From the NCBI RefSeq assembly GCF_041956535.1, contig NW_027192201.1:44475-96661 (forward strand): 52,187 nt of DNA, given 5' to 3'. The DNA comes from Calcarisporiella thermophila CBS 279.70. Taxonomy: Eukaryota; Fungi; Calcarisporiellomycota. Of the stretch, positions 51,556 through 52,187 are shown in pieces. The position numbers and the translations under genes are program-made. Position 1 is the stretch's first letter, and each line of letters opens with the position of its first letter. The notes beneath the pieces were generated by a model. It searched no databases. It had not been told where the DNA came from and worked only from the letters and a program-made list of their open reading frames with translations.

Positions 51556-51657
51556 TCTATTAGATTAGAAAATATAAGTGCGTAAATGAGAAATGAAAAA
51601 AAAAAATAAAATAAAATAAAATTATATATTCAAATGCCGCAAAAATGAATAAAAAAC

Positions 51658-51730
51658 TGGAGAACCCGGGTATCGATCCCGGTGCCTCTCGCATGCTAAG
51701 CGAGCGCTCTACCATTTGAGCTAGTCCCCC
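51658..51730 (-). tRNA. tRNA-Ala (AGC)
   Basis: Reverse complement GGGGGACTAGCTCAAATGGTAGAGCGCTCGCTTAGCATGCGAGAGGCACCGGGATCGATACCCGGGTTCTCCA; G3:U70 pair; T6 terminator follows. Confidence 0.97.
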
Positions 51731-51806
51731 AATTCCTGAGAATGTCGTGTGCTAGAGAAGGGATATGCTGTAAGCTAGGATAAATAGGCGAATAGTAGCG
51801 GTTTCA

Positions 51807-52074
51807 TAATCGAAATGGCGCGGGTTCGAACCCCGCAATCCCCACCAGCACTCGCTTCTTGAGATTGCTGTCCACTTGCCCTTTGGCTCTAACACGACAA
51901 ACACGACTTTCACGATAAACACAACAATAACGACTATTACTGACGCAATGAGCGATGCTCGTCAACATGACGTGGATAACTTACTTCGCGTCAAGCTCTT
52001 TCACGTCTGCTTCTTGTAATATTGGGAACTATTAACCTAATAAAAGTTTCCATTGATTGATCAAAAAAAAAAAA
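51807..52074 (+). mobile_element. 5'-truncated tRNA-headed retroposon (SINE-like) with poly(A) tail and target-site duplication
   Basis: T arm GCGGG-TTCGAAC-CCCGC, then AATCCCC-A-CCA; AATAAA 52039-52044; A12 52063-52074; flanked by (A)GCGGTTTCA at 51797-51806 and 52074-52083. Confidence 0.75.
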
Positions 52075-52088
52075 GCGGTTTCACGGAC

Positions 52089-52187
52089 GGGGGAGGGTTA
52101 GTGTAGTGGACTATCCCTGGTATGCCGACGAGAACGGCGTGGGTTCGAATCCCACTTCCCCCACCAGCACTTACTCTTAGTTTGTGG
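52089..52187 (+). mobile_element. Second related element: full tRNA-like Pol III head with encoded CCA, runs off the window
   Basis: Acceptor GGGGGAG/TTCCCCC, A box TAGTGTAGTGG, B box GGTTCGAATCC, ACCA, then the GCACT..TCTT trailer shared with the first element; no canonical D-arm/anticodon-arm geometry. Confidence 0.65.

Follow-up and report, generated by a model that had tools for sequence, protein, structure and literature searches.

A tRNA-like head with an encoded CCA on a SINE family found upstream of tRNA genes in Calcarisporiella thermophila

The end of a 52,187-nucleotide stretch of the Calcarisporiella thermophila CBS 279.70 genome (contig NW_027192201.1, positions 44,475 to 96,661, forward strand; this whole stretch is hereafter called the window) carries a sequence that resembles a tRNA and ends in a genomically encoded CCA. 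An earlier note, made from the letters of the window alone, described it as a tRNA mimic heading a second element and proposed that its structure, and not just its promoter boxes, is being conserved. This raises the question of what kind of element the sequence belongs to, and whether it is the RNA fold or only the boxes that is kept. The best explanation overall, with an estimated probability of about 0.85, is that positions 52089-52166 represent the tRNA-derived head of a recently active SINE, mobilised by a LINE and with a fold under selection as RNA.

The tRNA-like head and its element

The head constitutes the 5′ end of an element designated SINE family A. It measures 78 nt (52089-52166, forward strand, as for all of its parts) and contains, in this order, GGGGGAG, a long 5′ hairpin, a short linker, GCCG-ACGAGAA-CGGC, GTGGG-TTCGAAT-CCCAC, TTCCCCC, A, and CCA. 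GGGGGAG and TTCCCCC form an acceptor stem of 7 bp with one G-U pair (52089-52095 and 52156-52162), followed by the discriminator A (52163) and the CCA (52164-52166), with an invariant GCAC directly thereafter. The T arm (GTGGG/TTCGAAT/CCCAC; 52139-52155) is perfect and is abutted by the small hairpin, in which 7 nt separate GCCG and CGGC (52124-52138). Two putative internal promoter elements were retrieved, namely a box A (TAGTGTAGTGG; 52099-52109, +11 of the head), which matches TRGCNNAGTGG at 10 of 11 positions, and a box B (GGTTCGAATCC; 52142-52152, +54 of the head), which matches GGTTCGANNCC at 11 of 11. The acceptor, discriminator with CCA, T arm, boxes, and hairpins of the earlier note were all recovered at these positions. 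The long 5′ hairpin proposed there (GGTTAGT/ACTATCC) is present too, but it contains one T-T mismatch and competes with the 7-bp acceptor. Indeed, in the minimum-energy fold of the family-A head (-34 kcal/mol, z = -2.25; equalled by 2 of 200 shuffles), the long hairpin (52094-52118; head positions 6-30) takes positions 6-7, leaving an acceptor of 5 bp, and ACCA is unpaired.

Boxes A and B, the T arm, the acceptor, and ACCA would also be found in a genuine, unusual tRNA gene or in an organellar or bacterial tRNA insert, and ARAGORN does report a tRNA-like object at this place. However, that object is a tRNA-??? with a 2-nt anticodon, a 7-nt anticodon loop carrying an anticodon not being found, and the Rfam tRNA model scores the head below its gathering score (<29 bits). 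Similarly, an Rfam clan search returned tmRNA as the best match, with 21 bits versus a threshold of 47 and with the acceptor, T arm, and ACCA as the only parts involved. Neither ARAGORN, the Rfam tRNA model, nor the clan search yielded a normal, organellar, or bacterial tRNA match for the head, in agreement with the earlier note. In addition, more than 100 copies occur in the genome, each continuing into one common body with poly(A) and lying between target-site duplications. This copy anatomy already refutes a genuine tRNA, the probability of which is practically nil.

The multiplicity of the element was apparent in several ways. Comparison of the 112 bases around the head with the 28.2-Mb, 116-contig genome gave at least 40 scored matches (125 candidates), 40 of 40 being 95-100% identical. 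A 21-nt pattern from the head matched the genome 107 times and its reversed control not once, which is far beyond chance, a 19-nt tail pattern matched 164 times versus none in the reversed control, and a covariance model of the head retrieved 126 places, the heads and tails being spread over many contigs. The first nucleotide of the element coincides with +1 of the tRNA-like fold, the upstream flanks varying among the copies and diverging exactly at GGGGGAG. Full copies measure 332-341 bp and end in ...AATAAAAGTTTCCATTGATTGATC(A)n, thus combining AATAAA, a short stem-loop, and poly(A), an anatomy that was read over the whole length of two copies. Family A is short and presumably non-coding; its 334 bp could encode at most about 110 amino acids. 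In the window, the head is followed by the start of the body (GCACTTACTCTTAGTTTGTGG; 52167-52187, forward strand), the element running past the window end. Of the 21 copies in which a tail was recognised, nearly all lie between target-site duplications of 12-19 bp (for example, TTATTTTTTCTATTATT in locus L010 and TAGATTTAGTGGCTTAC in locus L012), the copies outside those 21 having an incomplete sequence or a variant tail. A non-canonical tRNA-like fold, devoid of a normal anticodon arrangement and heading a separate retroposed element, was what the earlier note had proposed, and the copies with their body and duplications bear this out. Judged by its copy number, boxes, duplications, and poly(A), all features of the sequence, the head belongs to a tRNA-derived SINE, which is a known kind of element. 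The earlier note had neither named such a high-copy SINE nor connected the head with a fixed place of insertion near tRNA genes.

As needed for a unit transcribed by Pol III, TTTT is absent from the sense strand of 38 of 39 full copies, compared with its presence in 87% of composition-matched shuffles, which, together with the consensus boxes, gives indirect support to a putative Pol III transcription of family A. Among public sequencing runs, none was found to contain the stretch, the shares being 0.05 at most and probably due to conserved words such as those of the tRNA-Ala gene. A few copies contain one to three extra G between the target-site duplication and the head, and the copy in L064 near 1200-1300 (G000:C9, about 860150) has its first 13 nt doubled at the 5′ end (GGGGGAGGGTTAG twice). 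These extensions may be junction artefacts of reverse transcription or reflect the nature of the RNA 5′ end; the extra G in particular could hint at a capped template not made by Pol III, or simply at slippage in the G run. Given the 95-100% identity among the copies, the element may still be active and, if so, amenable to experiment.

Alternatively, RNase P and an end-processing activity may release the head as a stable, tRNA-like product of about 75-78 nt with a CCA end, which would have a function of its own for the host or the element. Such a role would be analogous to that of mascRNA, which, like the head, is a tRNA-like fold within a longer transcript (MALAT1), its acceptor/T-arm stack being intact and its anticodon region reduced. 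The stack of the head is indeed intact and conserved, and there is a weak resemblance to the Rfam mascRNA model, but its 15.5 bits are far under the gathering score of 42.5. Moreover, mascRNA is cut out and receives its CCA afterwards, whereas the CCA of family A is encoded and the head is joined to the body in the retrotransposed RNA. Full-length copies begin at +1 with both head and body, indicating that the RNA was uncut when it was retrotransposed, and an encoded CCA normally inhibits tRNase Z (PMC3161902), making a processed RNA quite improbable.

Insertion upstream of tRNA genes

The window contains a tRNA-Ala(AGC) gene on the reverse strand (51657-51731; ARAGORN; 54.5 bits with the Rfam tRNA model), which has no CCA after its discriminator and is the Pol III gene whose upstream region holds the SINE landing site. 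An LTR-like repeat (TGTCGTGTGCTAGAG...; 51743-51806, forward strand) starts 12 bp upstream of this gene and contains the SINE target site; the repeat is uninterrupted in L005 and L016. A SINE was inserted at the identical nucleotide of this repeat at three loci, namely a member of family A in the window and in L002 and a member of family B in L038. The repeat beginning TGTCGTGTGCTAGAGAAGGG (window positions 51743-51806 and 52084-52088) lies at three different tRNA genes, including those of L002 and L038, each time about 10-14 bp on the upstream side. A distance of about 10-14 bp upstream of tRNA genes is the landing place of Ty3- or DGLT-A-like LTR elements.

Between the tRNA-Ala gene and the family-A head, a 5′-truncated SINE copy was found (51807-52074, forward strand), which has an AATAAA and closes with 12 nt of poly(A) at 52063-52074. 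Its distance from the 5′ end of tRNA-Ala is 76 bp, and of its head no more than the last 41 nt are left (51807-51847, the CCA occupying 51845-51847), followed by the body. The earlier note had taken it as the first copy of the element to which the head belongs, with a T stem that reads GCGGG/CCCGC versus GTGGG/CCCAC and with both copies continuing CCCCACCAGCACT. Whereas these differences and the common continuation were found as described, the two are not the same element, for the truncated copy is a member of a sister family, B. Only six genomic copies of family B exist, with an identity of approximately 100%, and the full-length ones start GGGGAGAGGTGG... (GGGGAGAGGTGGTGCAGTGG...) and possess their own complete tRNA-like head, ending ACCA-GCACT.

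The duplications at this locus allow the order of the insertions to be reconstructed. The left duplication of the family-B copy (GCGGTTTCA; 51798-51806, forward strand) is repeated at 52075-52083. The left duplication of the family-A copy (GCGGTTTCACGGAC; 52075-52088, forward strand) was deduced by comparison with L002, its right counterpart lying beyond the window, and its first 9 nt double as the right duplication of the family-B copy. The paralogous locus L002 contains the family-A insertion with GCGGTTTCACGGAC on both sides and no family-B copy, the uninterrupted ...GCGGTTTCACGGAC representing the empty site. Since L002 is empty for B, family A landed first, at -81 of tRNA-Ala, and family B later, at -76, between A and the gene.

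This position is not particular to the window. Among the loci examined, 50 distinct full heads were considered, 32 of which begin at a distance of 76-99 bp (median about 84) from a real tRNA gene, measured between the two 5′ ends; 16 amino-acid families are represented at these 32 heads. One further head lies at 215 bp, and all 33 heads with a tRNA gene within 400 bp are divergent from it (head-to-head), none being in tandem. As to the remaining 17 heads, other insertions were present between head and gene in several of those read. Upstream of one tRNA gene (L079:1-1600; G000:C26:154100-155700), five poly(A) retroposons have been inserted serially, namely a SINE-A, three headless elements, and one old, diverged SINE. 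A copy of the target, CTCGAGAGCGGGG, separates neighbouring insertions throughout this stack, indicating that the landing site is regenerated by every insertion. A first-pass search of the genome with a tRNA model gave 1459 candidates, a rough count that includes SINE heads, and tRNA genes are often clustered on the same contigs (for example, C8, C29, and C24).

Truncated LINE fragments lacking their 5′ part and encoding reverse transcriptase (RT) occur in the same stacks and in the same orientation as the SINEs. These sites are also taken by LINE 3′ fragments and poly(A) retroposons that have no head, so that targeting needs no intact head. The co-occurrence of tRNA-like heads and tRNA-gene targeting in one retroposon community might suggest that the head itself guides the element to tRNA genes, for instance by binding Pol III factors or tRNA-handling proteins. 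Yet the family-B copy of the window lacks the 5′ half of its head and is still found at -76, and the targeting of TRE5-A, a Dictyostelium element, is ascribed to contacts of its ORF1 protein with TFIIIB (PMC5911963). The head as a targeting device was rejected because of the headless and truncated copies at the same sites, and guidance by the head is regarded as very improbable.

Conservation of the fold and descent of the heads

The heads of families A and B fold independently to the same four-helix shape (z = -2.0 to -2.4). This common shape comprises a 5-bp acceptor, immediately followed by the long 5′ hairpin, a linker of 4-5 nt, a hairpin with a 7-nt loop that abuts the T arm, and the T arm itself, and it ends with two unpaired bases and ACCA; an anticodon arm is absent. 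Covariation was assessed with a model built from family A, to the structure of which 33 heads were aligned. In this structure-fitted alignment, in which the number of independent lineages is small (essentially A against B, with two or three minor lineages besides), pairing was found in 91% of the cells versus 86% in shuffles, and two-sided changes occurred in 14 of the 22 pairs versus 6.3 ± 1.6 in shuffles (0 of 500 reaching 14) and 2-7 in slid controls. Double changes were present in 10 pairs after removal of a real tRNA and a fragment from the alignment. Covariation among the copies, as the earlier note had anticipated, was thus found above the level of the shuffles.

Family B accounts for six two-sided compensatory changes, distributed over all helices, and only one of its 22 pairs is broken. 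These changes concern the acceptor (G-C to A-U), the small hairpin (G-C to A-U), the T stem (U-A to C-G), and the long hairpin (A-U to G-C, G-C to A-U, and A-U to G-C). Further double changes come from two minor lineages, and old single copies contain 2-7 broken pairs, as decay after insertion would give. Within family A, four of the five variants common to at least three copies are located at unpaired positions, the fifth turning G-C into G-U. Private variants affect 17 paired and 9 unpaired positions, which is near the make-up of the head (44:34), as expected by chance. The compensatory changes between A and B indicate that structure is conserved and not the promoter boxes alone, and substitutions at the subfamily level avoid breaking pairs, both of which agree with the proposal of the earlier note. 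The evidence favours selection on the RNA fold of the SINE master copies.

A competing explanation is that only the promoter boxes in the DNA matter, the fold being a reflection of tRNA ancestry, with heads A and B captured independently from different structured tRNAs. It would suit the small number of lineages behind the covariation and the structure-fitted alignment, as well as the joining of tRNA 3′ fragments to different bodies and the existence of a family F, the head of which is quite different and ends in ACCA too. Against independent capture, heads A, B, and C are mutually 67-71% identical (67% for full A versus B) and at most 63% identical to 43 sampled real tRNAs, a comparison in which unrelated real tRNAs reach 64% at the 95th percentile. 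In addition, the junction ACCAGCAC is identical in A, B, and C, and body and tail motifs are common to A and B. Further, A and B depart from the cloverleaf in the same way, without an anticodon arm and with the 7-nt-loop hairpin abutting the T arm, and the common variants of family A spare pairs whereas the private ones do not. An effect of the boxes alone is therefore considered rather unlikely.

Heads A-C most likely descend from one ancestral head, and the decayed single copies D and E probably do so as well; the junction ACCAGCA is invariant across all seven aligned head types. Heads C, D, and E are single old copies with poor folds (z about 0), which are taken as decayed and as neutral on the structure question. 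A parental tRNA was not found among the 43 sampled tRNAs (best identity 61-63%), so that the designation tRNA-derived rests on the boxes, T arm, acceptor, and CCA. A class II tRNA as the source, with the variable arm as the small hairpin, was rejected, as lengths and stems do not fit, and the same applies to tRNA-Ala and tRNA-Met, suggested by an anticodon-like TGC or CAT.

The family-F head consists of an acceptor, one long hairpin, and a T arm, and it ends in ...GGTTCGATTCCCGGYGACGGCA-CCA (ACCA), followed by GTACTAGAG. It has 14 genomic matches (among them L026:2551-2630, L081 on the minus strand at about 430 and 706, L009, and L063), and truncated family-F heads are joined to at least two different bodies. 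This separate head ending in ACCA indicates that CCA-ended tRNA-like heads were acquired more than once in this genome. Such repeated acquisition would fit an RT able to jump onto the 3′ ends of mature tRNAs.

Origin of the CCA, relation to known systems, and candidate partners

An encoded CCA is abnormal for nuclear tRNA genes, as the earlier note had put forward. Indeed, 0 of 47 sampled real tRNA genes have CCA after the discriminator, so that the CCA of the head is a real departure. Its origin from a reverse-transcribed mature tRNA, also proposed in that note, is plausible, and the CCA may be either a relic of birth from a mature tRNA or a retained function. As CCA generally inhibits tRNase Z (PMC3161902), an encoded CCA would keep the head joined to the body, as SINE RNA needs; this block of tRNase Z is hypothetical, and the CCA could equally be no more than a relic. 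Of the roles proposed in the earlier note (RNase P/Z processing, RNA stability, or priming), priming is unlikely for the 5′ element of a poly(A) retroposon.

Models of SINE origin derive the heads from mature primer tRNAs, through strong-stop DNA or template switching. They would explain an encoded CCA directly after the tRNA-related part, as in family A. In contrast with these models, no LTR-element sequence follows the CCA of family A, and with a poly(A) retroposon at hand, a jump of a LINE RT onto a tRNA 3′ end would fit better.

Under the preferred explanation, the internal boxes A and B would let Pol III read through the whole element, which is free of T4 terminators, and the polyadenylated SINE RNA would enter the genome through target-primed reverse transcription, carried out by the enzyme of a LINE with endonuclease and RT that chooses a fixed distance from Pol III transcription complexes, in the manner of Dictyostelium TRE5. 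The acceptor/T-arm stack would permit tRNA-type handling, such as 5′ trimming by RNase P, protein binding, and stability, which is the preferred reason for the fold, and the encoded CCA, as an anti-determinant of tRNase Z, would protect the junction between head and body against cleavage. Most likely, the CCA itself would date from the birth of the superfamily, when RT added a copy of a mature, CCA-ended tRNA to the 5′ end of a retroposon RNA.

A more far-reaching interpretation, which is tentative and has less than an even chance, extends this to the whole retroposon community, which would share a single landing pad some 80 bp upstream of tRNA genes. The community would include several SINE families, headless short elements, and endonuclease-plus-RT LINEs, and the system would be convergent with TRE5. 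The heads would have been born through the LINE RT, which would have jumped onto mature tRNAs, abundant where RT works. The four-helix mimic would be selected as RNA, its acceptor/T-arm stack still recruiting tRNA-handling factors, and the CCA would block tRNase Z.

Among fungal SINEs, Magnaporthe MgSINE and Aspergillus fumigatus AfuSINE2 are tRNA-derived and resemble family A in having a 5′ tRNA-related region with boxes, a tRNA-unrelated body, and duplications. A table of the AfuSINEs marks a "5′ tRNA-related CCA end" (PMC5063351), indicating that an encoded CCA is not new in itself. However, the MgSINE head folds as a cloverleaf (PMC5063351), whereas that of family A is a non-cloverleaf, four-helix structure without an anticodon arm and with compensation between families. 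Also in contrast with both SINEs, family A is high-copy, young, and specific in position and orientation upstream of tRNA genes; the text of the same paper does not contain the phrase "upstream of tRNA" (PMC5063351).

With respect to targeting, TRE5 of Dictyostelium inserts 40-54 bp upstream of tRNA genes in opposite orientation, its ORF1 protein binding TFIIIB (PMC5911963; PMC5006619). D. discoideum TRE5-A and P. pallidum NLTR-B resemble family A in their fixed distance, their use of many tRNA genes, their opposite orientation, and their repeated insertion at the same loci, and both belong to the non-LTR elements that have poly(A), an AP-type endonuclease, and RT (PMC5911963; PMC5006619). The present system differs from TRE5 in its distance (76-99 bp instead of 40-54 bp), in its host, a fungus and not a social amoeba, and in involving a non-autonomous SINE with its own tRNA-like head. 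Since family A is non-autonomous, it would be TRE5-like only through a partner. A review table lists tRNA-targeted non-LTR elements only in dictyostelids, with no SINE and no fungal non-LTR element (PMC5911963), and a full-text literature search retrieved no fungal case of such tRNA-upstream targeting.

Seen against these systems, the ordinary part is that tRNA-derived SINEs are common and that heads with an encoded CCA have been noted before. The variant features are the conserved non-canonical fold, the CCA inside the element, and, for a fungus, an insertion upstream of tRNA genes that resembles that of TRE5. It is less ordinary that, in young sister families, compensation in every helix allows selection on the RNA fold of the head to be seen, which is relevant to the long-standing question whether SINE heads serve as promoters only. 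The targeting context matters more, as a fungal LINE/SINE system operating at another distance would represent a new, convergent case of "safe-haven" targeting, and the first with a SINE.

As for possible partners, LINE ORFs in the genome carry endonuclease and RT domains, but the SINE-A tail or body was found in none of 12 RT loci. Elements of an RT-encoding LINE of the L069 type (L017:1849-2374; L077, reverse strand, 254-2230) have landing sites upstream of tRNA genes, as the SINEs do. The 3′ end of this type, the sole LINE 3′ end read, is pyrimidine-rich, with neither poly(A) nor the SINE tail, in contrast with the SINEs stacked beside it. The family-C head is followed by approximately 1.8 kb without an ORF. 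Another poly(A) retroposon, family J (L059:2402-2620; for example, G000:C17:674854-675094), is about 220 bp long, has no tRNA-like head, and occurs in at least 50 copies, some of which contain an internal insertion. Its last approximately 45 nt resemble the SINE-A tail; family J was nevertheless rejected as the partner LINE of SINE-A, for it shares the tail but measures only about 220 bp.

Several retroposon families have in common a 3′ stem-loop located 12-18 nt ahead of the poly(A), with AAUAAA within or adjoining its loop, as found at 52030-52074 of the window and in families in L002, L059, L063, L080, and L081. The stem sequences differ (for example, ATGGAAA/TTTCCAT, ACGGAAA/TCTCCGT, and GAGTC/GACTC), and the common stem-loop is probably the element recognised by the RT. 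Apart from the retroposons, the genome shows its fungal nature by 45 Zn2Cys6 domains and by an Opy2 domain encoded in the window.
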